A stretch of DNA of 64,000 nt. It comes from Oikopleura dioica. Lineage: Eukaryota > Animalia > Chordata. Where the stretch lies: positions 1,736,001-1,800,000 of the forward strand of contig OU015566.1 in the NCBI GenBank assembly GCA_907165135.1, written 5' to 3'. Below are positions 10,589 to 59,512 of this stretch, one piece after another. Every line of letters starts with the position of its first letter. Within the stretch, counting starts at the first letter, position 1. The notes under the pieces are model-generated. The model was not told the origin of the DNA. It ran no database searches and worked only from the letters and a program-made list of their open reading frames with translations. A program made the position numbers and the translations under genes.

Positions 10589-10762
10589 AAATAAAACCGA
10601 CGACGCATACTCAAAGCTGACCATTTTGACGCTTGACCTATTTTGCTGCCATACTCGAGCGATTTTTCTGTTTATAAGCAGTCCTAAAACTGAAAAAGTC
10701 ATCATTTGAACAAAATCAAAAAGAGAAGCAGTTTAAAGAAATCGCTGACACTCTGAGCTGGG

Positions 10763-11629: not shown

Positions 11630-11761
11630 AATTGAGAAAATACAGTACAGACGAAAAAATGACGATGATTTGGTTAGATCAAAATATTTGCATGATGTTT
11701 ATTTGCGCTCTTGAAAGTCGGGCCAGTTTTTTCGGAAAGAAAAATAAAAAAAATTTAAGAA

Positions 11762-12287
11762 ATGAAAATTTTGTTTTTTATTTTCCAACTCATTTTGGCA
11801 AGATATAATTCTATAAAATGCGTCGCATTGGAACTTAAATGCTCTGGCTCAGCATTTTCTTCCCGTTTTCACGGACGCTGCGTTCGTGCATATGCAGTAT
11901 TCCGTACGTTGGAAGGGCAGGATTTGAATTTTAACGGTGTCTGCAATTTATCACTTTTCACAATTTATCCGCAGAGGATTCGAGGCGGAGAAGTAAGAAA
12001 TGTATTTGAGCCGTGAAAAAAATTTTTCTAGTGCGGGAACACCGCCGAAAACCAGGAAAATGGAGGTCTTCAGTGGACAAATCGAATCACCAATGAGCTT
12101 TACGGAATCGACGAGACTTTGAGTTGCCGACAAGGTCCTTCTGATGGTGTTTTTGCGCGTGAGAGATTATTTTTTGAGACAATAAATCTTTCATTTTTTA
12201 GCGTATGTGGAAAGCCAAACTCGCGAATTCCGCTGGAACGCTGATTCTCGAAAATTTGAAATCATAAATGCTTATGGAATGTACTGA
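11762..12287 (+). CDS. Small secreted Cys-containing protein, paralogue 1 (147 aa)
   Basis: Signal peptide MKILFFIFQLILA; exons 11762-11992, 12032-12158, 12202-12287 with 39 and 43 nt GT-AG introns; same structure in paralogue 2. Confidence 0.75.
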
Positions 12288-12369
12288 AAAAAAAAACTTG
12301 AAAAAAAAACAAAAATGGTGGCTTGATTTTTTAATAATATATATTATAGTATATAAAATTATTATTGTA

Positions 12370-12766
12370 CAGTTTTTTTCCTCTTTTGTGGACCCCAACT
12401 TTGTGGACATTTTCTTCATTTTAAGGGGTTTATGTGGGACACTTTTGCAAAGATGATGTTCCACTTTTGTGGACATTTTCCCTGGTGAAAAAATTTTAGA
12501 GGTAAAAATAGCGTATTTTTTCAAAAATCTTTTGTTTTTTCTAAGACTTTAATGGCTTTTGAGGATCATTTAACAGACTTTAGTAAAAAAGGAGCAAGAA
12601 AATACGTTTCAAGGATGAAATTTCCTATTTTTACATAGAAACTAATGGGACCGAAAAATTTTAAGCCTCTACGGTGGAACATTTTTTTGGAGACTCTTGC
12701 CCACTTTTGTGGACATTTTTGAGAAAATTTGGGACAAAAAATGTCCACAAAAGAGGAAAATAACTG
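12370..12766. mobile_element. Tc1/mariner-type MITE (397 bp)
   Basis: TA|CAGTTTTTTTCCTCTTTTGTGGAC ... GTCCACAAAAGAGGAAAATAACTG|TA: ~24 bp inverted repeats and TA duplication. Confidence 0.75.
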
Positions 12767-13289
12767 TACCATTATTATTGAACGGTTTTCATATAAATAT
12801 TTTCGGCTCAGGGTTCCAATTTTTCCGAAAAATTCGGCATAAAAATGGACTCAAATTAAACATTTGAGACTTGGCAAAGAGCAATGACTATACGATGAGC
12901 AAGCGAAAGGCTGCGCGAGATTTTCGGAAATTGACTGATTGAGCGAGTGACATTTGAGCGAGATCTAAGCGACGTTTGAGCGGTATTTAAGCGAGGCTCA
13001 CGCTCAGATGTCGTCGAATTCTACCTCCTTTTCCTTCATGGAGGTCATAAATAGTCGTGGAATAATGTGCAGCATATAATTTTCGTTTTTATCAATGATT
13101 TATTCTTTATCCAATTTTATTTTTCATTTAAGCATTTAACCTGACTCAGGTTTAAAACACAGGTCGTCGAGCCCACCTTCGACGATTTCGCCTCATGATT
13201 TCAGAAATCAAAATATTTGCTTGTTGTTTATTTGCGCTCTTTGAATTCGTGTCAGTTCTCTTCGAAAAGCAAAATAAAAAAATTGAGAA

Positions 13290-13807
13290 ATGAAAATTTT
13301 GCTTTTTCTTTTCCAACTTATTTTGGCAAGTTATAATTCTATTCGTTGCGTCGCATTGGAACTCAAATGCTCTGGCTCAACGTTTTCTTACCGTTTTCAC
13401 GGTGGCTGCGTTCGTGCATACCGAACTTTGGGAAAGCAGGATTTGAATTTTAACGGTGTCTGCAATTTATCACTTTCGGAACTGCGTCCGCCGAGGATTC
13501 GAGAAGGAGAAGTAAGAAATGTATTTAAGCCATCAAAAAAAATTAATCTAGTGCGGAAATACCGCCAAAAATCAGGAAAACGGAGGTCTTCAATGGACAA
13601 ATCGAGTCACGAATGAGCTCTTGGGAATTGACGAAACTTTGACTTGCCGACAAGGCCCTTCTGATGGTGTTTTTGCGCGTAAGAGATAAATTTTTGAGAC
13701 AATAAAGCTTTCATTTTTCAGCTTCTGTGGAAAGCCAAACTCGCGAATTCCGCTGGAACTCCTTGAAAGGAAAATTTGAAATTATCAATGCTTTTGGAAT
13801 GTACTGA
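13290..13807 (+). CDS. Small secreted Cys-containing protein, paralogue 2 (144 aa)
   Basis: Exons 13290-13511, 13552-13678, 13722-13807; frame, Cys pattern and stop conserved with paralogue 1. Confidence 0.75.
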
Positions 13808-14957
13808 ATACAAACATGAAAAATGACAAAAAAATGACGGCTCATTTATCAACATTTTATTCAACATTTTTTATCTAAATATTTTCGGCCTATTAATAAA
13901 TTTGCAGCAGAAATTCACCCAAAAGACGAGCAAGAGCAGGACTCCTAAAAAACAAAAATTTGTCTTTTTGCCTCTTTTTTTTTAATTACCGATCGAGGAA
14001 AATAAAATAATCAAAAGAAGTTCTTCGTTTTCTCTTTGATCAAAATGTTCTAAAAGCGCCTCTTTTAGTTTCATTCTTTCGCGAAAATAAAATTCAATCT
14101 GGCGTATCGGAAAAAATCGACTGGGAGAAGAGGATGATCTGCGGTGGATAAACGTCAAATGAAAGACAATATGGCGGCTCGGATCATCTAATTTGTTTTT
14201 AAGAAAAAAATATTTTTAATAAAAAATTTAAAAAGCAAATTTGAAATTGTTTCTAGAGGCGCAAGAAATACAATCAATCTAGAAGGGGACAATCAGTGAA
14301 AGGCACTTGCGTAATCAAAAAGGCAGCACGAAGTTGAGGCCTGACATTGAACGAGACAAACCTTGGGGCGAATTTTGGCCAACAAAGATCTTAACAATTT
14401 TTTTTTTGTTTTCGGCTTTTTCAGGGCTGTTTGTTCAAGAGAGACCTTCGATTTTTCGAATTCAAAAGGTAATTACAAATGTTATGGAAAAGTGGCTCGA
14501 TTAATCTGGCTGTCTGGTAGACAGTTAATGTTGACGTTAGTTTTTAAATTAAATTTTTGATTAAAAATATAAATTCGAATTTTTTTCGTTTTTTTCCTTA
14601 AAAGTAAATCATTTTTAATAACAAAAACTAAAAAAATAACATTCTACAAAAATGAATGTATCCTTCTTCGGAAAAATAATGCTTTTATTGAAAAATAGAC
14701 GTTTTTACGTCCACTCTCCATTTTTTACCCGCTATCGAATTGTCCCGCGGCGGTGGGTGTGATGCACCTTTTTCAACCCTTTCTTTATATTTTTTCCTTC
14801 CAAACTCCTAAATCCATCTCCCAAGAGACAAGAATTAAACAAGTAAAGTAGTTTTTAACCAGCGAGTTTCACTGTTTTTCATGTAAAAAATGAGTTTGTT
14901 TTAGATTTGGTAGACAAAAGAAAGAGAAAAAAGAAGAGGAAGTGACTGTTACTACTC

Positions 14958-17900
14958 ATGGGAATAAGCTTGCTCAGGAAGAAGGTTTTCCTTGGTTATC
15001 TTGGACAGGTTCGACATGCTTCTCAGGAACGGGCTTCTTTTTTATCTCCTACGGGTGTATCTTCGTTATTTTTTTCTTCAAGAACCCGATTTTTTCTGAA
15101 AATAAGCCCCAAAAAAGCAACAAAGAAAAATTCAAAAAGTGCTGGTAGCGAATCGTGGAGAAATCGCTATTCGAATTTTCAGAAAAGGTGCAATTTTTTG
15201 AACTTGGGAGTTTATTTGATGGAGGTTTTCATTTTATCATTGGATTGTCTTTTTTACTGAGGGATAGAAGAAATTTTTTTATCGAATCTTTTTAGCTCGA
15301 TTTTTACAGGCGGAGAAAACTGATTTTTCGCATGTTTTTGGGTGAAAGAAAGTGGTGAAGAAAGGCACTTTTGAATTCTTGGATTAGAATTTTCCAACGA
15401 AGTGGTCTGTTGTTCGACGGAACTCTTCGTCAGTAGCTCGTTTCAAGTGATCCTTGATGCTAGAAAAGAAAGGTTTTGTTTGACGAAGATTAAGGGGGTA
15501 CGAACGTGAAGACCATGGGCTGTCGTTTTTGGCCGGTAGGGTTGATGAAAATGCCTCGTCTAGTAGACTGAGCTAGATTTTTTTTTTTTAGTAAAAAACT
15601 CGATCTTTTGGTCGCTCGAAGATAATTTCTTTACGTGACTGTTACGGTCAGAGTCTGACCGTCAGACCGTATGTAAATGACTGTAGTTGATCAACTTACC
15701 AGTAAGCTCTTTGAGTTGCGCAACCAACTTCATCCTGAATTTGATGAGATCTCTTGATGTCTTCGAAACAGCGCGATTTCGCTGAATGATTTTCTGTTAG
15801 TCCAAAAACGGGGTGTTGTCGGGGCCTAACCCCCTCTGGCGTCCGATGTTCGGAAGCCTGACGCAAGGTAACCAGAATTTGCAATCGAGGATCAACAATT
15901 TTTGGTCAGATGATGAAACTCAATTTAGCTTGAAGGGAAGACTTTCTTATGTAATCGATTATGTAATGAAGGGGATCAAAGTGGAACTCAGTAACCTCTT
16001 GCTTTTGGGGATATTTTACCTGGTTCTCTCAATTCTTTCTTTTTCTCAGAGTGAGTTTAAGACTAAAAGTGAAGCTATTTGGGAACCTTGGTGCACTTTT
16101 ATCGCCCATTCCCATGATGCTTGTTTTCCGATGTCTTGAAATCGAGACACCAGACAATCTCCCGGCTGATTTTCTCCTATCACTTTCCGTTGAGCTTTTC
16201 ATGTGATCAGCGGCGCAAGAATACAATGAATATGGCCCGAGAGTTGGGATGACGTCATTCTCACTTTTGTTCAGATACTGTTAGTTAGACAGAAGGAGAA
16301 AATAGATGTTAGCGGCTTGAAAAACAGACACCATAAATTCGGCTCAGGATTCTTTCTTCTTGAATTTTTAATAATAAGTAATAGTGATAGGGCAATAACT
16401 TCTTTAGATCGCAGTAAAAACAGAGGAAGCATGTTTATATTTGCTTTAGCAATTTTGGATGGAACTGATATTGATGGTTAAAAATTTGCATCCTATCAAA
16501 GAGCATGCACAGAATTGGACATCGAAACCGTCGCAATCTACGCCGCTGAAGACAAACACTCAGCCCATCGCACCAAAGCTGACACTGCCTACCGCGTTGG
16601 CGAGGGAAAAGCGCCAGTTGCCGCCTATCTCGATGTTCCTGACATCATCCGCATCGCGAAAGAACAAAACGTCGACGCCATCCATCCTGGCTACGGCTTT
16701 CTCTCGGAACGAGCCGATTTCGCTCAAGCTTGTACGGACAATGGGATCAAGTTCATTGGACCCAAGCCGGATATTGTGCACAAAATGGGCGACAAGGTCG
16801 AAGCGAGAGCGATTGCCATCGCCGCTGGGGTTCCTGTCGTTCCGGGAACAGACAATCCGATTGAGAATAACTCCGAAATCCGAAAATTCATCGAGTCTCA
16901 TGGTCTTCCAGTCATCGTCAAAGCCGCTTATGGTGGCGGAGGAAAAGGCATGCGAATCATCCGGAACGAGTCGGAAATCGACTCTCAATTCGAACTCGCC
17001 AAGTCCGAAGCCGCTCGAGCTTTCGGAAACGGAGCTCTTTTTGTCGAAGCCTATCTCGAAAAACCCCGACACATTGAGGTCCAAATCCTCGGAGATGAGC
17101 ACGGAAACATCGTTCACCTCTACGAGCGAGACTGCTCGATTCAGCGACGACATCAAAAAGTTGTGGAAATTGCGCCGGGGCACTTGCTCGACCCTGTTGT
17201 CAGACAAAACATGTTGGACGACGCTGTCAAGCTCTGCAAATACGTTGGTTACCAAAACGCTGGAACGGTGGAATTCTTGCTCGATTCCGAAGGCCGTCAC
17301 TTTTTCATCGAGGTCAATTCGCGTCTACAAGTCGAGCATACAATCACCGAGCAAGTAACTGGAGTTGACTTGGTACAGTCGCAGATCAAAATTGCCGAGG
17401 GCGCCAATTTGGAAACAGACCTTCATCTCGTCCAGGATAATATCAAGACCCAGGGTACTGCCATCCAATGTAGAGTGACAACGGAAGATCCGGAGAAAGA
17501 CTTTTCCCCGGATACTGGAAGAATCGAAGTTTTCCGAACTGCTGAGGGCATGGGAGTCCGACTCGACTCCGCTGCCGCTTTTCCTGGAGCCATCATTTCG
17601 CCGCACTACGATTCGCTTCTTTGCAAAGTCATTTGCTCCGGACGAGACATGGCCGACGCTTCGAAAAAGATGTCGCGAACTTTGGAAGAGTTCAGAATCA
17701 GAGGAGTCAAAACAAACATCCCGTTTCTCAAAAATGTAGCCAAAAATCCGCAGTTCATCGGAGGCGCCTGTGATACGACTTTTATCGATGCAAATCCGAG
17801 TCTTTTCAATTTCTCACGATCGGAGGATCGGGGGACAAAACTGCTGAATTATCTTTCTGAATTGATGGTGAACGGGCCGATGTGTGACTTGCCGGTAGAT

Positions 17901-20570
17901 GTCAAACCAGCTGATGTTCAGGAACTGACTTTTATTTTAAGATAATTGAAATTTGCGGGGATAAACCCTAAGGGCCGCCCGAGGACTAAAGTTCATTAAT
18001 CGATTTGAGTTTTTGATTCAAAGAATTTTCATATTTTAATTTCACACAAAGAAGAAAATTTTAACAGTTACGATTTTTATCTCGGTCATTAGTCTAGAAA
18101 ATTTTTCGGGAATTATTTTTAAGTCCGTTGAAAGCCGACAATTTCTGGTCATTCTAAACCACTCGGCTCAACCTCCGCCCCACCTGGCTGGCGAGACATT
18201 TTGAAGTCCCGAGGACCTGAAGGATATGCCAAGGCTGTACGCCAGAACCCTGGCCTGCTCATTACAGACACAACAATGCGAGACGCACATCAATCTCTTC
18301 TCGCCACACGAGTACGAACACGAGACTTATTGGGTTGCGCGCCGTTTGTCGCTGGAGAGATGCAACATCTTGGCTCTCTAGAGTGCTGGGGCGGGGCGAC
18401 TTTCGACGTTGCCTTGCGATTCTTGAGGGAGTGTCCGTGGGAGCGATTGCAAGAGCTAAGAACGCAGATTCCAAATATTCCCTTTCAAATGCTTCTTCGA
18501 GGAGCAAACGCAGTTGGCTACACAAACTACCCGGACAACGGCGTTCGGGAATTTTGTCAACTTGCCCACGACAACGGGATGGACATTTTCCGAGTTTTCG
18601 ACTGTCTCAACTACCTGCCAAATTTGATCTTCGGAATGGAAGCTGCTGGACAATCAGGAAGTGTTGTTGAAGCTGCGATTAGCTACACAAGCGACTGTAC
18701 CGTCCAACAAGGAAACAAGTACAACTTGGATTACTACATTAAACTCGCAAATGAGCTGGTCAGAAATGGCGCTCACATCTTGTGTATCAAGGATATGGCT
18801 GGCTTACTGACTCCAAAGGTAAAAATCATAACCTGTTTCTTTTTTATCTGTTTTGATATTTTCATTTTTTTGACTACATTGAATGAATTCCTGAATGTCT
18901 CCTCTCTAGTCGTTGATATGGCTCCTGTAATATTGTTTTCGCCCCACTCAACAGCAAAGCTCCCTATTTCAACTTATTTTAAGTCCGCCCATATGCTAAT
19001 CGACGCCCTTCGTCAGCGATTCCCCGACATTCCGATCCACGTCCACACTCATGACACTGCTGGAGTCGGTGTTGCCGCAATGCTGGCCTGCTATGATGCT
19101 GGAGCTGACATGGTCGATGCTGCTGTCGACAGCATGTCCGGAATGACATCACAGCCATCAATGGGCGCTCTCGTTGCTTCTGCGGGAGAAGTTGATACAA
19201 TGCTCAAGTTGAAGAATGTCTGGAAATACAGCGATTACTGGGAGCAAGGTAAGCCTTGAAAAAGAAACGCTTCTGAAATCCATTTAGCTCGAACACTCTA
19301 CTCGCCATTTGACTGCACTGCCACGATGAAATCTGGATCATCAGACGTTTACGAACACGAGATTCCTGGAGGACAATACACAAATCTGCACTTCCAGGCG
19401 TACTCAATGGGTCTTGGCGATCAATTCAAAGAAGTCAAGCAGAAATATGCAGAGGCAAATGAGCTTTTAGGAAACATTATCAAAGGTAACGATTTTTGCA
19501 AGAACCATAACCCAAGGATATAAAGTTTAAATTTAAATTTTCTGAAATCGTCAAAATTGAGTTAAGATTAAGAAGGTAACCTTCCGTGTTAGCCGTAATA
19601 AAGTTCACTTACACTTCTGATTCATAATTTATGAATCTTTTTAGTCACTCCATCATCAAAAGTCGTTGGTGATCTGGCCCAATTCATGGTCCACAACAAC
19701 CTCTCCGCTGAAGACGTCAAAAACACTGCCAAAGACCTCAGTTTCCCCAATTCAGTCATCGACATGATGCAGGGCGGCCTTGGCATCCCGGTTGGTGGTT
19801 TCCCCGAGCCGTTGAGAAGCGATATTGTTGGATCTCTACCGACGATTCATGGAAGACCTGGAGAGAGCATGGAGCCAATAGACTTTACGAAAATTGAAAA
19901 TGAGCTGATCTCGAAGTACAAGGATTTGAACATAAGCGCGGAAGATGTGATGTCCTACGCTATGTACCCAGGTAAGAAAATTTATTCTAGAGACTCAATT
20001 TTTTGAAGGATCCCCCTCATTTTTTATCTTTAGCTGTCACTGATGAATATCTCCGCTTCAAATCCCAATACGGCCGCGTTTCCGGCCTCGAAACCCGCAA
20101 ATTCTTTGTCGGCCCTGACATTGCCGAAGAATTCGATGTCGAACTCGCTCCGGGCAAAATCGTTTCTGTCAAGCCCCTCGCTGTCACTGACTTGAACGCA
20201 TCCGGCGAGCGCGAGGTGTTTTTCAACTACAACGGAGCGCTCCGAAGTTTGATGGTCAAGGACAAGGAAGCGGCGAAGACAATCGTTTTGCATCCAAAAG
20301 CGACTGCTGGAGTGATCGGGTCTGTTGGAGCGCCGATGCCGGGAGAGGTGATCAAGCTTTTGGTAAAAACAGGACAGAAGGTCAAGCAAGGAGATTCCAT
20401 CGCGGTTCTCAGGTAAGTCTTCTTGGCTTATACATCTTTTTTCATCAAATTCTAGTGCCATGAAAATGGAAACCAACATCCCTGCCCCTTGCGATGGCGT
20501 CATCGGAAACTGCCCAGCCAAAATCGGCCAGTCTTTGACCAAAGACGATCTCATTTGCGACATTAACTAA
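14958..20570 (+). CDS. PC: Pyruvate carboxylase, with probable mitochondrial transit peptide
   Basis: Exons 14958-15054, 15107-~15182, ~16502-17921, 18135-18818, 18984-19248, 19288-19485, 19645-19971, 20034-20412, 20456-20570; [12 protein letters not shown], biotin carboxylase, [15 protein letters not shown] carboxyltransferase and SAMKME biotinyl-lysine motifs. Confidence 0.97.
15384..16202 (-). CDS. Uncharacterised gene nested antisense in pyruvate carboxylase intron 2
   Basis: Three 3' exons join in frame with GT-AG introns ([31 protein letters not shown]|[23 protein letters not shown]|IKDHLKR...GKF*); ATG exon at 16202-16087; middle junctions not resolved. Confidence 0.55.
16250..16257. 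promoter_or_regulatory. Perfect CRE palindrome (TGACGTCA) 48 bp upstream of the nested gene ATG
   Basis: Exact 8-mer; the same TGACGTCATTCTC 13-mer lies upstream of the small membrane-protein gene at 44323. Confidence 0.35.
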
Positions 20571-21258
20571 TTCTTCTTTTTTTCCAAACCAAGTTCACGA
20601 CTATTAACTTTTTTACTCTCAAGTTCACGCTCACGGCAAAAATCATTTAGCCACTCTTTTATCTTCACTGTTATGTGTTTTTCCTTTCTTCCAAATTATG
20701 AAATCTGACTGTCTCTTGTTTCGATCGAAAAACTTATTGTCTGACTTTTTATCTATTCTTTTAGTTCACTTTTAGCAATAAAACTTATTTATCAATCAAA
20801 GAATGTGTTTTATTTCTCTAGAAAAAAGGAGATTTGTTTAGTTACAGGCATGTTAACAGCAGTTTTTCAGGATTTAAGGATAAAAAAGGAATTTTTTTCT
20901 CAGAAAAAAATTGTTAAAAAGGCAATTTTTAGTTCTTTTTTTTTAATAAAAATGGTTTAAAATAAGGGTGTCTCTTCGAAATTCTATCCTTTGAAAAGTT
21001 ATTCAGTTTAATTTACCCCGTTTTTGTTCGATCATTTTGTTTCCTTGTGACCTTGAGTTTGGGCTCTCTGGTCTGCAGAAGTGTTAATAAAATCGCGCGT
21101 GAGGTAATCTACAGTACGCTCTGAGCAGAAATTGCGCGTTTTTCAGCCGCCAAGCACGCAGCGCTAAAATCAATAAATGGCAAGGCTATCTGAAATTTGC
21201 CGAAAAATCTAAACCAGGATTTTTGCAGATCAGACGAATAGCTAGAGCGAATTCAAAT

Positions 21259-23864
21259 ATGAGCAGAGCAAGACTTCTTTCAACTTCTACTCCCCAGGTA
21301 AGAAAATGAATAGTAAAAATCAACGGAGCGGAAATCGAGAAAAAAAATAGTATTGACTGTTTTATTTTCGATTTTCTAAAAATAATTTGACTGAAAATTA
21401 AGCATAAAATATTTCCGATAACTCATCCGAGCTTCTTTTTCTTCATTTTCATCAAAGTGATCGTCAGTAAGCTGCTTGTAATTATCTTGTAGACGAACGA
21501 GTTCATGAGTTCTTAGAAACCATTTTCAAAATTTGTTTTTTACATGGATCAAGAAACAGGTTTTTTGAAAAGTTCCTGAGTGGAATGGGCTCACTTCCGA
21601 AATGGTCGAAAATTTTAAAAGAATTGAAAATGCAAGAAATAGTTGGAAAAAGGAGAAAAACTGTAAAAATCATTTTTTAAGACAGTCAAAGGCCTGCACT
21701 TGAAGGTGCTTTTATACCTATTCGTTGAACTTCTACATCCCCATTATAAAAATTAAAAAGGGAAATGTCCCAACATTATCCAAAAACAAGAATAGTCTCC
21801 TTTCCAACTTCTGTTTATTTTCTGAATGTCGATCACAGCCATTCATTTGAACTTTCAGATCATGGCCCAGGGTGCTTCCACAGCCCTCGAACACAACTGT
21901 CTGCTAGACATCGACGCCTCCCAGCGACCCCACCGAGGCTCCCACATTGTCTGCACCATTGGCCCAGTCTCTCGATCCGTCGAAAAGCTCACTGAATTGA
22001 TTGAAGCTGGCATGGACATTGTCCGAATGAACTTCTCCCACGGAACCCACGACTACCACCGCGAGACCATCCTCAACGTCCGAAAAGCCATCGACAATCT
22101 TCGAGCCAAGAAGACTCTCTTCAAGCCCGTTGCCATTGCCCTCGACACCAAGGGACCTGAAATCCGAACCGGTCTCCTCGTTGGCGGCGGCTCCGCCATT
22201 GTCACTCTCGTCAAGGGCGAGAAAATCACCCTTTCCCTAGACGAAGCCGACTTCGAAAAGGGCACCAAGGACAAGATCTACGTCGATTACAAGAACCTTT
22301 CCAAAGTTATCAAGAAGGGTGACTTGATCTTCATCGACGATGGTCTTATTTCCGTCAAAGCCGTCGATGTCAAGCCAAATGCCATCGTCTGCGAAATTCA
22401 GAACGGTGGAGAACTCGGATCTAAGAAGGGATGCAACTTGCCCGGAATCGAAGTTGATCTCCCTGCTGTTTCCGAGAAGGACAAGGCTGACTTGCTCTTC
22501 GGTGTTGAAATGGGAGTCGACATGGTCTTCGCTTCATTCATCCGAAAAGCTGCTGATGTCATGGCTGTCCGCGATGTTCTTGGAGAAGAAGTAAGTTGGT
22601 CTTTTGAAATAAATAAGTAATTATTAATTTCAGGGAGCTGCTATCAAAATCATTTCCAAAATCGAAAACCACGAAGGTGTTCGGAAAGTCAGCGAAGTCA
22701 TCGAGGCCTCCGACGGAATCATGGTTGCCCGAGGCGACATGGGAATCGAAATCCCCGCTGAGAAGGTCTTCCTTGCACAGAAAATGATCATCGGCCGATG
22801 CAATGTTGTTGGCAAGCCAGTCATCTGTGCTACCCAGATGTTGGAAAGCATGACTTCCAAGCCTCGACCTACTCGGTAAGAAACACATTTGAGGGATTTT
22901 CCTTATTCATATTCTAGAGCTGAAGTCAGTGATGTCGCCAACGCAGTTTTGGACGGCGCTGATTGCGTCATGCTTTCTGGCGAAACCGCAAAGGGTGAGT
23001 ACCCAGTCGAAGCTGTCCAGATGATGGCAAGAATCGCCCGAGATGCCGAGAGCGCTATCTTCACCGAACAGGTTCCCTCTTATTTCCCACCCTCTGTTTG
23101 ATGATTTTCTAGACCTTCGCCGACATCAAGGCTAACACTGGCGTCAGCAAGGAGTGGACCGAAGTCATCGGCTCCTCCGTCGTCGAAGCCGCCAACAAGT
23201 GCAACGCCGCCGCAATTGTTGTTCTTACCCGCACTGGTGATTCCGCTCAGCGAATTTCCAAGGTAAAACCCATCCTCTCTCTTTCTTTTCAAACCATTTC
23301 CAGTACCGACCCGCCTGCCCGATCCTCGCTGTCTCCCGATTCGAGCAGACTGCTCGACAATGCTACCTCCACCGAGGAGTTCACCCTCTCCTCTACACCG
23401 AACCCGTCCAGAGCAAATGGGAAGATGACATTGAAGCCCGAGTTCAGTTTGCGTTCAAATCCGCCCTCGATCGAGGTTTTGTCAAGTAAGTCATCCTTTT
23501 TACGAAAATTGATTCAAAAATGATTCTCCTTTTCACAAATTGATTCAAGGAAAGATCAACTCGCGTTGATCGTCACCGGGCCAAGTGAAGATAAGGCTGA
23601 CAGATTTGTTGTCAGAACTATCTAAAGGGTAATTGCCGATTTGGTTTGTTTTCGTTTCAGTTACAGTCTCTTACAGTTAGCTTACAGTTTTGATGTCCAC
23701 TTAACTAGCCATTCTTTGCATGTTTTTTTTTTTTGTAAAAATCTGTAATCTTATTCTCATTAATATTTTCTAGAGCCGGCCAAATCGCAGTCGTCGTCAA
23801 CGGCTGGGCGCGCGGAAAAGCGCAGACAACAAATACCATGCGTCTCATGACCATTTCTGCCTGA
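21259..23864 (+). CDS. PK: Pyruvate kinase with two candidate terminal exons
   Basis: Exons 21259-21297, 21859-22590, 22634-22875, 22918-23071, 23113-23262, 23304-23485, then 23550-23625 or 23774-23864; motifs [57 protein letters not shown]. Confidence 0.97.
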
Positions 23865-27900: not shown

Positions 27901-30900
27901 CCGAACGGTCAACGGAGTGGTTTTTTTGAAAATCTGTTGGAACTATTTCTTATAAAAAAATATGCATTTTGATATACATATTGCCGGATCTCAATCCATC
28001 CAAAGGTTTGGACCGCGACGAACCACCAGAATGACCAGCTGGTTCCAAAAATATCACCTCGATGAATTCAGCGATTACTTCGCTTCAAGAAAAGCTATTG
28101 ATCGTAATCATAGCACGCCTAGGACAAAAGTTCAAATTCTTGAATTCTCGTATCTTGTAGTTTCAGTCCACTTTGAGGCGCTAGAAAATCTCAGAGGATA
28201 CCCAGATTATTTATTTTTCCAGTTATGAGAAGAAAACGCTTTCAAAGCTCCAATAAAAGCCATTGACCATGTTTCTAGCACCTATAAACCAGAAAAAATT
28301 CTTGGAGATTCCTTTTAAAAACGTGAAATTTTCCATATTAGTCCTGTTCGGACATTAGAAAAAAATTTTTTAAAAAATATTCCCAATAGCTATGCATAAA
28401 ATTTTTAGTGAGGATAAAAGCCAAGTGTCTGTTACATATAAACACACATTATTGAGATTGCGGCTTTTAGATTTTTTGAGATAAGGCTGTTTTAATGTAG
28501 CTATTTAAAGAAAAAATATGTCACTTGAAAAGTAAAAGGCGTCGCAACTGTCCTTATTTTTCATTTCTACCTCTGAAATTTGTCTCGCATATATTTTGAA
28601 CCCTTTACTGCAAATAACAAAGAGAAAATAGTTCATCAGCATTCATTATATATTGAATTCGATTTTTTAAAGCTTTTTAACCAAAAAATAGCCATTTTTA
28701 GGGCTTTTTAGCCTCTCTAATCCCACGTTCACCACCAATGGTGCTAAATTTTTGTGGGTGGGGGTTTTTGACCATGCTGAATTCGGTACTGATGAGAAAA
28801 AAAGGATTTGAGAACTTTTTTTTTCTGTGTCCGACCCTAATCTAGAGCATTACACGGCAAAGAATTATTTGAGTAAAAGGAGCTAACAAATTATTTTTGG
28901 GAAATCGAGGCTTGAATCAAGACGTTAGATGAAGAAATTTTCTTTAAAAATTCGAATTTTGTATGAAAAAAAAATTACCTTTGCTACAATTTCCATGAAA
29001 AATTATGGTCATTTATACGAGTCAAATGATAAATATTCAAAAAAAATTTGCTTCACTCATCAATATTTTCCTTAGATCTTTCGATCCCAACTACCGATCG
29101 CTGCTTTGATGCTTCCTTCATCTCAAACTACCTCAACTGCTCCTCCCTCATCAACCCTCAAAGTCGAATCGAATCATCTCGAAATCGCCGATCAGCAGAT
29201 TCCGAATCCGACAAGCATGGAAAGCACAAGAAGCACAAGAAAAAATCGCCGAAGAAAAAGAAGAACAAAGGCAAATCGAACGCTGCCAAAGCTGGTTCTT
29301 TAGCTGGAAAAGCCGCGGCCGGGGCAACAGGAGCCGCAGGAGCTACAGTGCTGAGAAAACCGATCGTCAGTGATCGAGATTCGGCTCAAAACCCATTCAG
29401 TCCTTCTGCCATGAATCTCCAAATCCGCCCTTTTGACGAATTCGAATTTGAGTGGACTTTTGAGATGCCAGAATATCAACCTCTCGATCTTTACTTTCTC
29501 TTCGATTTATCCTACTCGATGGAGCCCGATGTCAAGAACTTGATCGCATATTCTGAGAAACTCTTCGAAAAGTTCGAAAATATTTACCCGGAAGGAAAGA
29601 GGGACTACTTCCACGTTGGCTTTGGCAGTTTTGTTGATAAACGACTGATGCCGGCTTCGAGTGAAAACGATGTTATCTTAGGTAAATAAACTACAGTTTT
29701 CCCTTGAAATTGAAACTCGTTTTTTTAAGAAAACCCCTGCGCTCTGGACCCATTGGATTCTCCTTCTGGAGGAAAGTGTGCAACAAACTTCGTGTTCGAA
29801 AACAACCTTCCTCTTGCTCAACGAGACGGTGCAGAATTCAGCAAGGATATCAAGCGAAACGTCAAGGTCAGTTCAAATATTGACTTTGAAGAAGCCGGAC
29901 TCGACGCGCTGATTCAAGCAGCTGTTTGCGACCAAGTCGGGTGGAGAAACACTGCGCAAAAGATGATTGTCTACATTTCCGATGCAGGATTCCACACTGC
30001 TGGGGAAGGAATCCTGAGCGGACTGCTTGATAGATACGAAGAAAAGTGCCAGCTTGAAAGCAACGTAGTCCGGGATGGAGACAAATACGACTACCCATCC
30101 GTCGGCCAAGCCGCGAAAATCCTCAATGATCGAAACATCATGTTGGCCTTGACCATTTCTGTCGATGAAGAAGATGATTCCGATATTTCCCACGTGGAAT
30201 CTTCGTACAATGACTTGGCGAGTCTCATCGGAAACTCTTTGGTGGAGAAGATGTCTAGCAGACAGAATGTGGATGAACTCGCGGATCAGATTTATAAAGC
30301 ATACAAGGAACTTTCAGAGAGGGCGTATGTCGACTTGAGTGAATTGCCGACCCCGGGTTATCCGTTCAATTGGAGAATCACGAAGACCGAACATTTTGAT
30401 AAAAATGGACGACCTGTGAGAAGAGACGATGAATGCACAACAGGTAGGAAAAACCATAAATCACATTTTTTTATGAAAATTGATGAATTTTTGAATATGG
30501 ATGAGTTCGAGATATTTTGATTGGCATAATCTTAAATCCAATTGTCGTAAGTGTAAGAGTATTATTTTATCAAATTATTTTTCTAGAATGCGAGCATGTT
30601 CTCCCTGGCCACTCCGTCCGCTACACCACCCTCGTCGAGCATGTCCCCGGCCTTGCAACTGGTTACGCAGTCAATGCCCCTGAAATCAGAATCGGTGTCG
30701 TTGAAGAGCGCCTCCAAGTGGACATGAGCTTGATCGAACACTGCAACTGCGAAAATAACGACGTGAACTCGGATCAGTGCGAGTCGAAGGACCTGGAATG
30801 CGGGATCTGCAACTGTGGCGAAGGGTACACAGATGATGAGTGTAGAGTTGATGGGGATAAACCGCCGTGTCAGAATGTTGGACATTGTGTCTGTGGAGTT

Positions 30901-32385
30901 TGCCACGTAAGATCATCCTTTCACACCAAGATCATTTGCAAGTGCTCTTTAAAAATCAATTTCACACAGTTTTGCAAGAACTATAAACTTTAGCCGGAAA
31001 AACTATTTTTATTGTTTTTTACAAACGTAAAACTTTTTCTAGTGTCCCGATAAATTTACTGGAGATTATTGCCAATGCAACCTTCAATCATTCTGCAATG
31101 CTGGAGACTGTGTCCATGGGGAGTGCCGGGAAACAGCTGATAGTACAATTGAAAGGTACAGAGAACCGGAATTTCTAAAGAAAATGCTTCAAATTAAGCT
31201 GCAAAATGGAATGTGTTTGCGAAGATGGCTGGCTAAAAGACTCTGTTGGTGCTTGTCGGTGTCCTCCAAATCCGGAAAGTTGTCTGTCAGTTGATGGTCA
31301 GAGCTGCGGAGGGGAGTTTCAGGGATCTTGCGATTGCAACACTGTGAGTTAAAGAATAGGTTTGAAAATCAACATGACTTAGTGCCGATGCAACAAAATT
31401 GCTGATTCGAACAACAACGTCCTCGGAAAATGGATGGATGACAAGAAATGCATCCCTTTCAAAGATGAATGTCAGGATTATTTGAAAAAATACATCACGT
31501 GCCGACTCGATTTTTGCGAATCAAAATCAGATGCCGGTATGTTTTTCTCTCGTTATCTCATCATCAGGGATTTTAAGAGGGTTGTTGGGAAGAATCAGCA
31601 AATGAATGTCACTTGGAAAAGAACCCGAGCTACAAAAATATCAACTTCGAGGGAAATACCGTCCAGAACTATGGAAAAATCGACATTCAGAATATTCAAC
31701 CTCAGACTTATGAAAAGGTAATCGACTCATATCTTCCAGTACTCATTTTCTTGAAGGCTCCAGGATGCACTATTCCAATCACGAAAATCGCCGAATGGGG
31801 AAGCGAAATCACCTGTTCAGCGAATTTCGGCATTGACATCCGAGAAGACAACACTCTTTCTCTCAAAGTGCATCTTTTCTCAAACGACAAGAAGTCTTTC
31901 GAGGAAAACTTGACAAAATGCAGCATGGACCCCAAAAAGTGGATGACGATTGCAGGCTGCAGTACTGCTGCTTTGTTGATCCTTCTTATTGCCAGTATGT
32001 TTGAACCTCTCTCTCTCTTTTATAAGTCAATTTTCTAGTCATTGCGATCTTGGCAAAGTGGTATTTGAACTATCAGTCCAAGAAAGAATGGATACAACAT
32101 GAGTCAAACGTCGAAAAATCAATGCACAATATGACGCAAAACGCCCTCTACACAAATCCAACATCAACTCACAATGCGACTGGTGACCAAAACTCTCTTG
32201 AAACTGTTAGTCCTCTCATGATATTCTCCTCTCAAATATTTTTTCAGGACAATTTGCTGGATAAAACGACTGGATCTCATGTTCTCCCAGAGACAGGAGC
32301 AAACAACAACAACGAAACTCAACTGGATGAAACTGTTCAAGCTGGTGCGGCTGGAGAATACTGGGGTCGAAATCGCCAGAAATAA
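24952..32385 (+). CDS. Divergent integrin beta subunit
   Basis: Signal peptide and PSI start (CRAKENCGECIQASPKCAWCE); beta-I MIDAS DLYFLFDLSYSM; EAGLDALIQAAVC...VGWR; Cys-rich EGF repeats; TM helix ending LAKW; exons 24952-25093, 29076-29681, 29730-30443, 30587-30906, 31043-31155, 31199-31343, 31383-31536, 31578-31717, 31757-31994, 32039-32205, 32248-32385. Confidence 0.9.
25112..28839. mobile_element. 3.7 kb non-autonomous hAT-type foldback element in integrin intron 1
   Basis: 8 bp target duplication ATCTAGAG (25104-25111, 28840-28847); 14 bp perfect TIR TAGGGTCGGACACA; long internal inverted arms; no transposase ORF. Confidence 0.85.
26085..27425. repeat. 60 bp minisatellite, ~16 copies forward then ~6 inverted, at the centre of the foldback element
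   Basis: Unit tgacggggcgaagccgacccgaaggggaggccagtctcgtttattcaattgagtc; orientation flips at ~27065. Confidence 0.9.
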
Positions 32386-32434
32386 TTCTTTATTTGTAAA
32401 TAAAATGAAGTTCACAGATTTTCTGATCAAAGAG

Positions 32435-33475
32435 TCACTTTCTCCAGTTCCAAAAAATGTTCCAATCGAAATCTGAGCCGCTTTCAGTTTCACTTGCAGC
32501 TTTGATAGCTTCAGTTGTTGTTAATTGTGGCGGAAATTCGGTCACTTCTTCGAACCCGTATTCATCATACTCGAAAATCAGCCCTGTTCTGAGATCGACA
32601 ATACTGTCACTGTAAGATCCGTCTCCTTGGCAATCGCTGATCATGGAGTCTCCCGAGCTTTCCGCGGGTTTCGTTGATCATCCGATATGTTACAAAAAGA
32701 AACTTTATAGAAACCCATCGCTAGAATACCACGCTCTTAAGGGGGTAGAACTAGGTTTTTCGAAAATAGCCGATTCTAGACCGGCGCTCAAAGCCAGGAG
32801 AGCTTAGATTTTCATATTCTCTCTTCGGCTGAAGATAGAACAAACTTAGATCTAACAACATTTTTCTTAAATTTTTTTTTCGTCAACACATTTTGGCGTG
32901 AGAGAGCGAAACTTCAACCCCCCTCTTCGAAACTTGCAATTTTAGCGTATTCGCGTCCTCAAATTTCCTGAATCACGTGACTAGCCAAAATTTTTAACTC
33001 TCATTTTAAGATAGTTAAACCATTTATCTAGCAACATTTTTGAGGAAATTGCGTAATCATAAGTAAAAACAGGTTTTTCTTATTAAAGGGTGCCTCCCGA
33101 AAATCACGATTTTTCGAAAAATCTAGTTCTACCCCCTTAAACAAGGAAGATTCGTGTTGCATTCTAGATATCGTCCTCTTTCATCTGTTACCCGCCTAAA
33201 AATGAATAAGTTCTAGTTCAAGCTTGAAAAAACCTGATCGGGAGGAGCTCGTCTCCAGTTATTTTGTCAATGCAGTAGCAAGTGCCATCAAAGCACTGCC
33301 GCGCGTTGTATTTCTTGTCATTCAATTTTTGGCACTTGATTTCTTTTCGCCATTTTTTCGCGCTTTTGCAATTTTTCGCCGGAATCGACAGCGGATTTGC
33401 GAAGAACGGGTTCTCTTTTTGATCAAAAATTATTCCACAGTTGATCAGACTAAAGAAAATTGAATAAAGGAGCAT
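32435..33475 (-). CDS. Secreted thyroglobulin type-1 repeat protein (~182 aa)
   Basis: Signal peptide MLLYSIFFSLINC; QCFDGTCYCIDKITG motif and a degenerate second repeat (SDCQGDGSY...VDLRTG); exons 33475-33234, 33195-33133, 32735-32715, 32657-32435 give one open frame. Confidence 0.7.
32741..33136. mobile_element. 396 bp MITE with TTAA duplication and GGGGG ends, coinciding with an intron
   Basis: TTAA at 32737-32740 and 33137-33140; ~26 bp TIR GGGGGTAGAACTAG(G/A)TTTTTCGAAAA with one mismatch. Confidence 0.9.
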
Positions 33476-33847
33476 TTCGAGTCAAAATCTTAAGAAAAAA
33501 AGGAAGACTGAAGATATTCTGAAGGCACAGTGATTTATCTCGCCTTGTAATTGGGCAATTACGAATAGCCACGTCCGAGTTTGAGATTTTTTTTTCACAT
33601 CTATCTCGTATTATCCCTTTGATCCCATAAATTATCCAATTCTGACGAGTTTTAGTCATTCTGGAGGACACAGTCTAATGTCGTTGTAGCAGCCAAGTGA
33701 GTCCCACGCAGGGTCGCTGTTTATTGACTGACAGGGTCACTTGACGGCTATAAAAATTTTCTTCCTCCGAGATAAATCCACTTCATTACTTTCACATTCA
33801 ACCTTTTTTTTCTGATTCAGGGAAAAGTTTCAAAGAAGGGAGAAAAA

Positions 33848-42106: not shown

Positions 42107-44130
42107 ATGAAGGCCTGGATCGAAATATATCTTCAAAAAAATATAAATTATTAAGCAAAAATCATTAAAAATATCGTTATATCAGATCTAGAAATCTTTC
42201 CTTCCTGAATTTTTTAATTTAATTATTCATTTTAATCCATTCAAAGCTCTCTATCTCCTTACTTTTATCAACAACCAAGGGTTTTGACCTGTCAACCCTC
42301 GAAGCCGATGGCCTCGAACTTATGCAACCATGCTTCGGCCTTCCTCGATCAAAAAATCTCCCCAAGATCTCCAGCGGTATTGTCCCGAATAACTACAAAT
42401 GCAAAGTCCGCTGCATCGACTACAAGAAACACCGATTCGCTGTCCGAATCACTGATGGAGAAATGGTGCCAAAACTCGGCTGCGCTACTGCTGAAACTCG
42501 GGGCTGCCCACTTCACGAAGACTATTACTTTAGACAGAAGCGGTCTATCTTCGACAAAGAGAACCAAGATTACATTACTCCGAAAACGACGTTTGTCAAA
42601 TGCAAAAATTTGGGAATTGACTCTCCTGAATTCCGCCATCGCTGCGTCAAAAACCGCCCTCAAGTCTCCCCAGAGCTTTCCTTCCGATGGGTTCCTGATC
42701 TTCGAGAATGCTCTGAAGTCTCAACAACGACGACTACAACCACCACAACAACAACTACGACGACAACAACGACCACAACAACTCCCGAATCCTCAGTCTC
42801 CGATTGGTCGAGCTGTCCGGATTCCGGAGTTTGTCGACCGGAAATTCAGACCAGAACTATTGATGGCGCTATAGGAACCGATCTCGAATCATTCTAGAGT
42901 CAAGATAAGAGCCTAGCTCAATATTCAAGTCTTCTTTCTAAATCGGGCACAAGAGTCACGAAGATGCTTCCCGTTCTCCTGCCAAGCTTGCCATGCTGAC
43001 ATGACGTTCTTCGAGTGGGATATCAGTTCGACAACCTTGACTGCTAGAATTCCATGGGTCAGCCGAAACAACTTGGTCGATGGTTTCGTACCAGTCAACA
43101 AACGAGTCAAGGTTTCCATTTTTCATTTTTTCTAGAATCTTTATTTCTTCTAGAATGCTCGATGCATGGACTCAGTTGAAGTTAACGCGAAATTAGGAAG
43201 CCCGTGCTTGTGTGACGAAGATCAAGGCTGCGCTTTCGACAATTGGCCGGAAAATATTTGCGCTAGAAACGGCTACGGAGAAGAGTACTTCTGGACTCCC
43301 GGTCCTCAGAAAACTTTCACTGAAGATCGAGATTTTACTAGCACGATTGTCGAGGATGATTACTCTTTGACTTACCTAGGTAAGGATTTTCAAAGAGGGT
43401 TAATCATTCTACGTTTTTTCAGGAACGAATGGAGAATCTGATGTTCGATTCTCCGATCGAATCAGCTGGTGGGAAAACGGACCATCCATCTGTCGCGCTA
43501 GAACCGAGCTCTACATGCCTGGTGTCGAGCGACCAGTTTTGAAAGACGATGGTTCTTTGAGCACCCCTGCATGGAACCAACTCGAATGCGATTTTGAGAT
43601 CAACAAGTATCCAACAACAAACGATCCTATTTCAAGCACTTCATCCAGCCATGGAAGCGACAGCTATGAAGTTTTGACTGGACATGCTAAATGGATCAAG
43701 GAACGGCTCAAAATTTTGAACACCAAATAGAGTAGATTCAATTCTAGAGCCAAAATAGGCTTCGGAACTCAACGAAGAATACGAGCGACTAATCATTGTC
43801 GGCAACTACAATCAAGGCTTCATGTACGAAGAAGGCCAAGAATACGGTCTTTGTCGATGGTCGAAAGAAAACTGCATCAAAAGATCTGGCGCTAGTTGCC
43901 ATTCTGATGGAAGTCTGAGCGCTGTTGAAAACGAACAGACGAGAGATTTCATCAGAAACGCTCCTTACCATCCTGGCGTCCTGAGCTGGAGACGAGGAAA
44001 CTTGGTCTGCAACAGTTTGGTCGGAGTCCAAGGAATTACTAATAATGTCTATTCTGTGCGAAACGAAATTTTCCCTGACAACGATGAGCTTGAAATCCTT
44101 GTTCGATCTGTCGACATTACACCAAAATAA
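42107..44130 (+). CDS. Secreted modular protein with Thr tract, TSP1-like motif and Cys-rich C-terminal region
   Basis: Signal-peptide-like LSISLLLLSTTKG from 42247; ~21 Thr run; DWSSCPDSGVCRPEIQTRT; downstream exons to stop at 44130; start codon and two junctions need non-canonical (GC/GA) or ambiguous donors. Confidence 0.65.
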
Positions 44131-44409
44131 AATAACTATCGTGTCTTGTTTATTGGTGTTGATAAATTATCAATGATAATGCAGCCAAAAACTCATGATT
44201 TTCGCCTTTATATATTTTTATTTCTCAATGATTAAATTTTGATAAGAATTTTTAATAAAATTTTCTAAGAATTTTTTAACGACTCTGTTTCTTTGACAGC
44301 GGGCAAGGCGATGATTGGACCTTGACGTCATTCTCCAAATCATTCTTTGTTACGATCTTATTTGAGTAGTTCTCTTTTGGAGAACAAATGAACAGAAACA
44401 CGAGAAATT

Positions 44410-44887
44410 ATGAAAGAGGAAGAAAATTGCACTAACGAAAGATCAGGCCAAGAAAAGGATGTTTCTCTTATCGACACAGATCAAGAGCTCGTTGATGACG
44501 GTCAGCTTCTTGGTCAAGGGTAACATTCTTTAATTATTATTATAAATAAAACTTTTTTCATAAAGACAAGTCAGTATTGACATAGATGTCCCTCTTCTTG
44601 ACACAAATGAAAGGCAACGAAATGAAGAGGAACAAAATGATGACCAAGAAGTAAATACCCCTTCAACTGAAGAGAACTCGAAAAAATGCTGCTCGAAAGA
44701 ATGTAAAATCGTCACAAACAGCATTTTGTTTTTGTTTGTCATCGCTTTGCTGGTATTCAAATTCGTCTTTGAGTTCAATCACAATTCTGATCCGATAGGG
44801 ACTATTTTCATTCCGATTCTTGGAGTTCTTACCCTAGCGAAACTTTTGCATGACGTAAAAAATGCCGACTTTACTAAATTCTGTTGA
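44410..44887 (+). CDS. 143 aa acidic protein with KKCC motif and two hydrophobic helices, copy 1
   Basis: Exons 44410-44519 and 44566-44887 with a 46 nt GT-AG intron; upstream ATTGG and TGACGTCA. Confidence 0.7.
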
Positions 44888-45376: not shown

Positions 45377-46645
45377 GATGGCGCTATAGGAACCGATCTC
45401 GAATCATTCTAGAGTCAAGATAAGAGCCTAGCTCAATATTCAAGTCTTCTTTCTAAATCGGGCACAAGAGTCACGAAGATGCTTCCCGTTCTCCTGCCAA
45501 GCTTGCCATGCTGACATGACGTTCTTCGAGTGGGATATCAGTTCGACAACCTTGACTGCTAGAATTCCATGGGTCAGCCGAAACAACTTGGTCGATGGTT
45601 TCGTACCAGTCAACAAACGAGTCAAGGTTTCCATTTTTCATTTTTTCTAGAATCTTTATTTCTTCTAGAATGCTCGATGCATGGACTCAGTTGAAGTTAA
45701 CGCGAAATTAGGAAGCCCGTGCTTGTGTGACGAAGATCAAGGCTGCGCTTTCGACAATTGGCCGGAAAATATTTGCGCTAGAAACGGCTACGGAGAAGAG
45801 TACTTCTGGACTCCCGGTCCTCAGAAAACTTTCACTGAAGATCGAGATTTTACTAGCACGATTGTCGAGGATGATTACTCTTTGACTTACCTAGGTAAGG
45901 ATTTTCAAAGAGGGTTAATCATTCTACGTTTTTTCAGGAACGAATGGAGAATCTGATGTTCGATTCTCCGATCGAATCAGCTGGTGGGAAAACGGACCAT
46001 CCATCTGTCGCGCTAGAACCGAGCTCTACATGCCTGGTGTCGAGCGACCAGTTTTGAAAGACGATGGTTCTTTGAGCACCCCTGCATGGAACCAACTCGA
46101 ATGCGATTTTGAGATCAACAAGTATCCAACAACAAACGATCCTATTTCAAGCACTTCATCCAGCCATGGAAGCGACAGCTATGAAGTTTTGACTGGACAT
46201 GCTAAATGGATCAAGGAACGGCTCAAAATTTTGAACACCAAATAGAGTAGATTCAATTCTAGAGCCAAAATAGGCTTCGGAACTCAACGAAGAATACGAG
46301 CGACTAATCATTGTCGGCAACTACAATCAAGGCTTCATGTACGAAGAAGGCCAAGAATACGGTCTTTGTCGATGGTCGAAAGAAAACTGCATCAAAAGAT
46401 CTGGCGCTAGTTGCCATTCTGATGGAAGTCTGAGCGCTGTTGAAAACGAACAGACGAGAGATTTCATCAGAAACGCTCCTTACCATCCTGGCGTCCTGAG
46501 CTGGAGACGAGGAAACTTGGTCTGCAACAGTTTGGTCGGAGTCCAAGGAATTACTAATAATGTCTATTCTGTGCGAAACGAAATTTTCCCTGACAACGAT
46601 GAGCTTGAAATCCTTGTTCGATCTGTCGACATTACACCAAAATAA
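45377..46645 (+). pseudogene. 5'-truncated duplicate of the secreted Thr-rich/TSP-like gene
   Basis: Identical 3' exons but no promoter, signal peptide or Thr tract. Confidence 0.7.
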
Positions 46646-46729
46646 AATAACTATCGTGTCTTGTTTATTGGTGTTGATAAATTATCAATGATAATGCAGC
46701 CAAAAACTCATGATTTTCGCCTTTATATA

Positions 46730-47116: not shown

Positions 47117-47313
47117 TATTTTTATTTCTCAATGATTAAATTTTGATAAGAATTTTTAATAAAATTTTCTAAGAATTTTTTAACGACTCTGTTTCTTTGA
47201 CAGCGGGCAAGGCGATGATTGGACCTTGACGTCATTCTCCAAATCATTCTTTGTTACGATCTTATTTGAGTAGTTCTCTTTTGGAGAACAAATGAACAGA
47301 AACACGAGAAATT

Positions 47314-47791
47314 ATGAAAGAGGAAGAAAATTGCACTAACGAAAGATCAGGCCAAGAAAAGGATGTTTCTCTTATCGACACAGATCAAGAGCTCGTTGAT
47401 GACGGTCAGCTTCTTGGTCAAGGGTAACATTCTTTAATTATTATTATAAATAAAACTTTTTTCATAAAGACAAGTCAGTATTGACATAGATGTCCCTCTT
47501 CTTGACACAAATGAAAGGCAACGAAATGAAGAGGAACAAAATGATGACCAAGAAGTAAATACCCCTTCAACTGAAGAGAACTCGAAAAAATGCTGCTCGA
47601 AAGAATGTAAAATCGTCACAAACAGCATTTTGTTTTTGTTTGTCATCGCTTTGCTGGTATTCAAATTCGTCTTTGAGTTCAATCACAATTCTGATCCGAT
47701 AGGGACTATTTTCATTCCGATTCTTGGAGTTCTTACCCTAGCGAAACTTTTGCATGACGTAAAAAATGCCGACTTTACTAAATTCTGTTGA
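47314..47791 (+). CDS. 143 aa acidic two-helix membrane protein, copy 2
   Basis: Duplicate of 44410-44887 at offset 2904. Confidence 0.65.
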
Positions 47792-57899: not shown

Positions 57900-59512
57900 C
57901 ATATTGGCTCCTCATTCGTCAGATTGACAGAATCAGGTTTCTTATTGGTTCGAAATTTTCAACCAATAAGATCCCAGAATTCGGTCTTTCAGCGAATCAG
58001 CAAGCGAAAATGACCGAGTTCTTGAACACCTCGAACTTCCTCCGAAAATACTCATTGGCCCTTTCATCAAGGCTAGATGCTCTTGGTCTACTATTCTTCC
58101 GAAAGCTCGAAGCTCTAGAAGCGATCCTCGAAACATTTGGAGTCAAAAAGATAGACTCTTTTCTCGTCATTTTTTCTCTTTTTCTCTTCTGATTCGAGAT
58201 AATCAAGTGGTGAACTTTTTTTCGCGAGGGGCTGCTGATTCCTTTTACAAGTTGATTGAAAATTCATGATAACTTGAGCTTGTAAGGCCGCACTTCTTAG
58301 AAAAGTCTGTTGCCCGCTTTTTCAATGCGTTCTCATTTTGCGTCTCGGATTCAGGATTAATAATCGGCTCAGTCGGTCTTCGATTCAAGGACGAGACAAA
58401 TTAGCAAAAATGGAATCCAAATGCATGAAAAAGGGATTTGCGATTGGGATTATTTTTGAACGTTTAGGGGTTGAACCTGCTTTTTTATGCTACATTGGTC
58501 TACAAATTCTTCGTTTAAAGGGGGTAGAAACAGCTTTCTCGATTTTGGACTTCAGCTACATAAAAGAAAACAAAATATTTATTAATGTTAACGGAAATTC
58601 CTCATAAATGTTCCTACTAGGAACTTCCTAGAAAAGGGACTGAGATTCACAAAACTGTGACTGAAATTTGCTTAACTATCAGGTGACTCGAGATATTCCT
58701 ATTTGAAAAGTGGCGAAAATCGAGAATTTCGGAGAGATGAGTTGCTTCTTAGCCCGCTTTCTCAAAAAATTGATGACTAAAAAAAATTTCGAGAGAAACG
58801 TTCCTAGATCTAAGATGAATCTATCTAAACCTGAAGAGAAAATTTGAAAATGTAAGATTCTCTTGTCTGTAGCGCCGGTCAAAAATCGCCTTTTTCGGAA
58901 AAAAGCTGTTACTACCCCGTTAAAGCTAACCCTAACCCTAGCCCTTCGTTTTCAAGCTAATAACAGATCTCATCCTAACCCTAACTCTAACCCTAACCCT
59001 TCCTTTGGGCACAAAAGAGAACGGGTCCTTAAATTAGCTTCGTTATCCGCCTGAATCTCTGAATAAAAAGGAAAACCCAACGACCATCTCCTGTGCTGAC
59101 AATGCTCCTGTTAACGGTGTTCTCTCAGATCATCAATAAAACATAGATTAGAAAACAGGTACATAACGATACGCATTCATGTCAGAAAACGTCTCATCTC
59201 CGGTTTTCACCCTTCCTCTGTAACAGTTCGCTCGTCAAGCTCATTTCCAGACGACGATTTTCTTGAGTGCGGATTTGAGCAATTATCGCTGCAAAGTGAT
59301 CGAGTCAAATTTCGGAAGTTTTCGTTTCGAGATTGGCGGCGTTGTTTCAAGTAGTACTCGCGTCGTAAATTCTCATCCATGATTTCATCAGCATCTTCTT
59401 CCTTTTTCTCTTCCCCCTCGCATTCTCTCAGTTTGATTTCTCGACCGATAAGGCTTTTCTTTCTTGACTCTCGAGGACCGACATGATCACTGTCAGAAAA
59501 TCTCGTCGCCAT
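57900..59512 (-). CDS. Possible low-complexity coding exons (upstream part of the SYT7-like gene or a separate gene)
   Basis: 101 aa ATG ORF at 59512-59207 and further coding-like segments at ~58400-57990; junctions not resolved. Confidence 0.35.

Follow-up and report, generated by a model that had tools for sequence, protein, structure and literature searches.

A young Kolobok-type MITE in a coding exon of a probable thyroglobulin type-1 gene of Oikopleura dioica, a candidate nascent intron

Results

A MITE within a coding exon

A 396-bp non-autonomous DNA transposon (MITE; 32741..33136) lies in the second exon of a small, probable thyroglobulin type-1 (Tg1) gene on the minus strand of a 64-kb window of Oikopleura dioica DNA (the whole stretch analysed; positions are counted from its first nucleotide). 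Sequence comparison shows that the insertion is real and derived, and the element supplies predicted splice sites, making the locus a solid candidate for a nascent intron rather than a demonstrated one. The element breaks the codons ...PCLR/AW..., and the minus strand reads ...CCT TGT TTA A/GGGGGTAGAA...CTACCCCC TTAA G/AGCGTGG, or, as read over 32400-33600, ...CCT TGT TTA A/GGGGGTAGAACTAG...CTAGTTCTACCCCC TTAA G/AGCGTGG. The initial annotation had placed the element in a thyroglobulin-repeat coding frame at CCT TGT TTA A, and rereading the sequence reproduced all of its coordinates.

A precise empty site is found in three independent data sets: a DNA run carrying the same species label (X5) and two marine-metagenome contigs (L005 and L006). 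In X5, one contig runs from 32737 through a C straight to 33139, giving CCT TGT TTG AGA GCG TGG (PCLRAW) on the gene strand; its depth (58) is that of the flanks, so this sample shows the empty form only. L005 and L006 read CCT TGT TTG AGG GCG TGG, again PCLRAW. The CLRAW allele that the initial annotation had predicted for other populations thus exists, while the filled allele is seen in the assembly only and in none of the other haplotypes or lineages examined, which counts against an insertion that is efficiently spliced. The target-site duplication is TTAA on both sides (gene-downstream copy, 32737..32740; gene-upstream copy, 33137..33140), whereas all three empty alleles have a single TTGA. 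The window codon at 33140-33138 is TTA; a synonymous Leu change, TTG>TTA, in the window lineage therefore made the TTAA before the MITE landed.

Misplacement of a repeat copy into the exon during long-read assembly was considered, the MITE family being high-copy and the DNA runs of the same study containing only 70–86% of the sequence words of the stretch. An artefact of this kind would create no target-site duplication, so the perfect TTAA duplication, where other lineages have a single-copy TTGA, speaks against it, as do the exact and otherwise undisturbed boundaries, and we regard this explanation as very improbable.

Ends and family of the element

Inverted-repeat searching identified two 30-nt arms, 32737-32766 and 33111-33140, that are 97% complementary. 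Each arm consists of TTAA and a 26-nt terminal inverted repeat (TIR) of the element (32741..32766 and 33111..33136); the TIRs are complementary at 25/26 positions, in agreement with the size, TTAA duplication and ~26-bp TIR first described. An 18-nt end motif is present at both ends (chance expectation in the window, 0.01), and three occurrences were reached in 0/100 shuffles. Following the third, degenerate match in the window revealed another copy of the family (58520..58919), an old one with ~72% identity across 210 nt, in DNA that appears to be non-coding. Its ends read GGGGGTAGAAACAG... and ...CTGTTACTACCCCG, with TTAA at 58920-58923; it directly adjoins short interstitial telomere-like CCCTAA runs (58926-58998), and no convincing ORFs were found close by. 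Scanning metagenome sequences for the 18-nt TIR end gave two sites, both dismissed as chance matches with neither an inverted partner nor further similarity. Elsewhere in the window there are 100%-identical blocks (42862-44214 vs 45377-46729, 1353 bp; 44213-44500 vs 47117-47404, 288 bp), the product of a segmental duplication of very recent date or of duplication in the assembly.

Summed X5 depth over the MITE bins is ~3,700–22,000, compared with 56–70 for the unique flanks; since summed depth is not copy number, the family is termed simply high-copy and recently active. Of 583 X5 contigs on the MITE, 161 are at least 99% alike, with about five majority differences from the window copy among those listed. 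Judged by its near-perfect TIRs and its few differences from the rest of the family, the exonic copy is young.

The element has the TTAA-specific 4-bp duplication and the 5'-RR...YY-3' termini of the Kolobok superfamily (PMC9587614), starting with GGGGG and finishing with CCCCC (5'-GG...CC-3'). In contrast to a complete Kolobok system, only a non-autonomous copy is seen here, and no autonomous copy with a Kolobok transposase was found within the 64-kb window. PiggyBac elements share the TTAA duplication, but their TIRs are 12–19 bp long with a highly conserved first C (5'-C[C/A/T][C/A/T]; 5'-CCC...GGG-3') (PMC5381638); membership of that group was rejected, as the TIR here is 26 nt and opens with G.

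A constrained host gene

The interrupted gene encodes what is probably a small secreted Tg1 protein, of 181 aa in its ancestral form, and is conserved. Exon 1 (33234..33475, minus strand) carries the ATG, a signal-peptide-like N-terminus and most of the Tg1 domain, and is kept in L005 and L006, which hold the whole three-exon gene of an ortholog at ~80% DNA identity. Intron 1 (33196..33233, minus strand; 38 nt, GT-AG) has a position common to this ortholog and to a paralog annotated as OKI2018_I69.chr1.g351 (P0017). Exon 2 originally comprised 60 + 21 = 81 nt (33195-33136, then 32735-32715). Its upstream half (33133..33195, minus strand; ...RYLECNTNLPCLR) now ends at 33136 or 33133, depending on whether a GG or a GT donor is taken, and its downstream half (32715..32735, minus strand; 21 nt, AWYSSDG) has become a micro-exon created by the insertion. 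In the paralog, the second exon runs without interruption across the homologous ...NLPCLDFWYGSS...ECDAGGSY....

The micro-exon, through which the initial annotation kept the frame to the natural stop, is supported by the ortholog, whose introns measure 38 and 61 nt and whose exon structure matches that of the window gene. The 57-nt GT-AG intron that follows the micro-exon (32658..32714, minus strand) contains in-frame stops, is kept in the ortholog (61 nt) and is also supported by X5, where indels between 32686 and 32708 add up to a non-multiple of three and so fit an intron at that place. It is absent from g351, in which the exon is continuous; the paralogs differ here by the gain or loss of an intron, an event that has no connection with the MITE. 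A gene model with GCGTG/GT as donor and ATCAG/CG as acceptor was rejected, as it removes the WYSS motif kept in both ortholog and paralog. The last exon (32435..32657, minus strand) ends with TGA at 32437-32435.

In a Pfam comparison with PF00086, exon 1 by itself reaches 17.4 bits, below the gathering cut-off of 20.6, because intron 1 splits the domain, whereas the paralog (23.8 bits) and a homolog (P0003; 31.5 bits) exceed the cut-off, and the QC...CYCID...G...C motif is conserved. Differences between X5 and the window in the last exon are mostly synonymous (11/13 at synonymous third positions), and comparison of the window with L005 gives a dN/dS of 0.064 across the gene, with 0.087 for the part upstream of the insertion and 0.027 for the part downstream. 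On these comparisons the host gene is real and under strong purifying selection, and so is in use in the species.

The annotation of g351 begins within the Tg1 domain and has no signal peptide, which suggests that it is truncated at the 5' end. On the opposite strand (29048-32100, + strand), a convergent multi-exon neighbour was judged by eye to be integrin beta chain-like, with a motif (DLYFLFDLSYSM) that recalls the beta I-domain MIDAS, and with Cys-rich EGF-like ORFs.

Potential splice sites

Three junctions that would restore an open reading frame were predicted. In the GT-AG register originally proposed (candidate intron 32736..33132, minus strand; 397 nt), the donor GT at 33132-33131 is formed by bases 5-6 of the element, within the TIR at 33111..33136, and the AG at 32737-32736 by the duplicated TTAA and the next host G, as the initial annotation had it. 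Splicing from 33132 to 32736 would remove 397 of the 400 added nt and leave an open product of 182 aa (CLRGAW, one additional Gly), also as described, but this is not the sole in-frame route. A GG-AG junction (33135..32736) would remove exactly 400 nt, leaving no scar and restoring the ancestral 181 aa (CLRAW), and pairing of the TIR GT donor with a CTAG in the 3' TIR (intron 33132..32751) would leave +18 nt (CLRGSTPLRAW). Retention, in contrast, brings translation to an end at a TAG directly after ...CLRG (102 aa), the immediate stop anticipated in the initial annotation. When the GT donor is paired with nearby AGs, 5/18 combinations yield open in-frame products, which is about the chance rate, so an in-frame junction is in itself unremarkable.

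Under the hypothesis of the initial annotation, the MITE would be excised efficiently as a newly gained spliceosomal intron of introner type, by one of these three registers, and the allele would be functionally near-neutral; this is a serious possibility that we hold with reservation. It draws on these in-frame, stop-free junctions and on the symmetry of the TIRs, which makes the splice signals independent of insertion orientation; the generalisation that any insertion at a sense-strand TTAA/G would be tolerated is logically consistent. Its pyrimidine-rich ...TTCTACCCCCTTAAG acceptor at least equals the GGAAAG acceptor of the 57-nt host intron. Splice-site weight matrices inferred unsupervised from ORF pairs in the window were near-uninformative, dominated by false pairs, and were discarded; comparison of signals was confined to well-supported introns of the host gene and paralog. 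Undisputed introns of the gene and its ortholog have donors GTTTTT and GTTTCT/GTTTCA and acceptors TTTTTAG and GGAAAG, and the paralog tolerates an annotated intron of 415 nt, so that neither the weak GTAGAA donor and the AAG acceptor nor the length (~400 nt) of the candidate would exclude splicing. In O. dioica annotation, 11–12% of introns are non-GT/AG (PMC8008620), GA-AG being prominent among the non-canonical ones (PMC7072748). The ORF downstream of the insertion is intact, but this carries little weight for so young an insertion.

Against efficient splicing, the predicted pre-mRNA fold places both TIRs and the TTAA copies in a ~30-bp terminal stem (MFE -129 kcal/mol, z = -5.1) with both candidate splice sites inside it. 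Such a stem could juxtapose the sites, or it could mask them; sequestration of both would work against their recognition.

Transcripts and proteins

Neither a spliced read or contig nor a corresponding protein was found in the RNA runs and protein collections searched, which also weighs against efficient splicing. One raw RNA run with the species label gave 0 reads over 1.3 kb, which does not amount to a test. Nine other runs labelled as RNA of the species contain almost none of the sequence words of the stretch and may come from other cryptic lineages. Two polyA/random-primed plankton metatranscriptomes (X8 and X9) contain only other copies of the MITE (~93–99% alike; depth 2–6), still joined to unrelated flanks exactly at TTAA, again a point against efficient removal; these unspliced family copies in wild RNA libraries could be pre-mRNA or DNA carry-over.

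In a collection of 5.8 billion proteins, no exon-1 or last-exon protein of this lineage was found, although the annotated OKI2018_I69 paralog is present. The top protein matches suggest that the window comes from Okinawan O. dioica. Search lengths were 47–149 aa and about 89–282 aa (161-aa query) for exon 1, and 44–140 aa for the last exon. These searches, including an exhaustive representative search, returned the paralog, the last exon of the ortholog and distant Tg1 proteins, and the junction was in none of them. Exact-product look-ups gave no record for the exon-1 ORF, the last-exon ORF, a MITE-internal ORF or a neighbouring 191-aa ORF. The host gene thus appears to be unannotated, and the 181-aa secreted Tg1-domain gene seems to be missing from public O. 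dioica protein sets; as the orthologs also seem to be unannotated in the other public sets, the gene may just have escaped annotation, and its absence is weak evidence.

A transcript could also bypass the MITE by skipping the whole of exon 2, or the gene could be silent in this lineage, with the insertion having no consequence. Exon 1 and the last exon would stay in frame, because the ancestral exon 2 (81 nt) is a multiple of three, and none of the indexed RNA runs gave evidence of expression. However, skipping would cost the Tg1 domain two conserved cysteines, and a silent gene fits poorly with strong purifying selection on a gene used in the species, so that we consider both variants improbable.

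Discussion

Our best explanation, held tentatively, is that the filled allele is a rare, segregating and imperfectly neutralised insertion (a null or a hypomorph). The synonymous TTG>TTA change in exon 2 first made the TTAA target, into which a young Kolobok-type MITE then inserted by cut-and-paste. Unspliced transcripts from the filled allele would stop at the TAG right after ...CLRG. At best, splicing from a donor in the TIR (33132 for GT, 33135 for GG) to an AG that overlaps or lies close to the TTAA duplication would rescue a fraction of them, and the insertion would thus be raw material for an intron rather than an established one. A poorly neutralised allele is favoured by the combination of a constrained gene, a young, derived copy and two splice sites inside a ~30-bp stem, and by the lack of any sign of processed mRNA in the protein collection or RNA-labelled runs searched. 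Against it stand the three in-frame, stop-free junctions available on paper, host introns with equally weak signals, the 415-nt paralog intron and the frequency (~11–12%) of non-canonical introns in O. dioica (PMC8008620).

The locus invites comparison with introners, DNA-transposon-derived intron families described in Micromonas and Aureococcus (Huff 2016; surveys PMC9860276, PMC12130899). As in those families, the element is a multi-copy, non-autonomous DNA transposon with TIRs and a target-site duplication. The X5 depths, the 161/583 near-identical contigs and the second copy in the window indicate a multi-copy family; 26-nt TIRs and the TTAA duplication lie at the ends of the candidate intron; and the orthologous sites lack the element, X5, L005 and L006 being empty and the paralog exon uninterrupted. 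In introners the element brings one splice site and the duplicated target completes the other, and removal leaves a scar that is a multiple of three; here, both are predictions. Oikopleura is not named in the main text of either survey, and the tunicate with validated introners is Styela clava (PMC12130899).

A further comparison is with Fritillaria borealis, also a larvacean tunicate, for which MITE-derived non-canonical introns are described (Henriet et al. 2019, as summarised in PMC11282704; PMC13326754). These introns bear TIRs and target-site duplications, occupy species-specific positions and are removed by a spliceosome that tolerates odd sites; they are mostly AG-AC or AG-AT and are accompanied by specialised U2AF paralogs, whereas the candidate sites here are GT-AG or GG-AG. 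The present case differs further in that one insertion of recent date is involved, and its empty allele is known. For Oikopleura itself, transposon insertion is tabulated as the source of some introns in Table 1 of PMC3443670, citing Denoeud 2010. Both the Fritillaria introns (PMC11282704) and the Oikopleura entry (PMC3443670) lend precedent to efficient splicing at this locus.

It is conceivable, and in our view rather unlikely, that the active Kolobok-type MITE family of Okinawan O. dioica is a true introner, its symmetric ends supplying a GT or GG donor and a TTAA-G acceptor. In that case, splicing would remove exonic copies with the frame kept, or even scarlessly, and the birth of introns would be visible as presence/absence polymorphism in a culturable chordate. 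Scarless GG-AG removal would also be a possible origin for part of the unusual G*-AG introns of O. dioica.

The origin of new spliceosomal introns is a long-standing question. Known introner systems are mostly those of protists and algae, or ones in which the event is obscured by age. O. dioica can be cultured and completes its life cycle in a few days. At this locus the insertion can be set beside its precise empty allele and the ancestral exon, in a host gene under constraint and with explicit junctions predicted. If the MITE is not spliced, the locus would be one of the expected segregating loss-of-function insertions; if splicing is confirmed, its value would lie in showing intron gain at a stage when the site is still polymorphic, and in a chordate amenable to culture.
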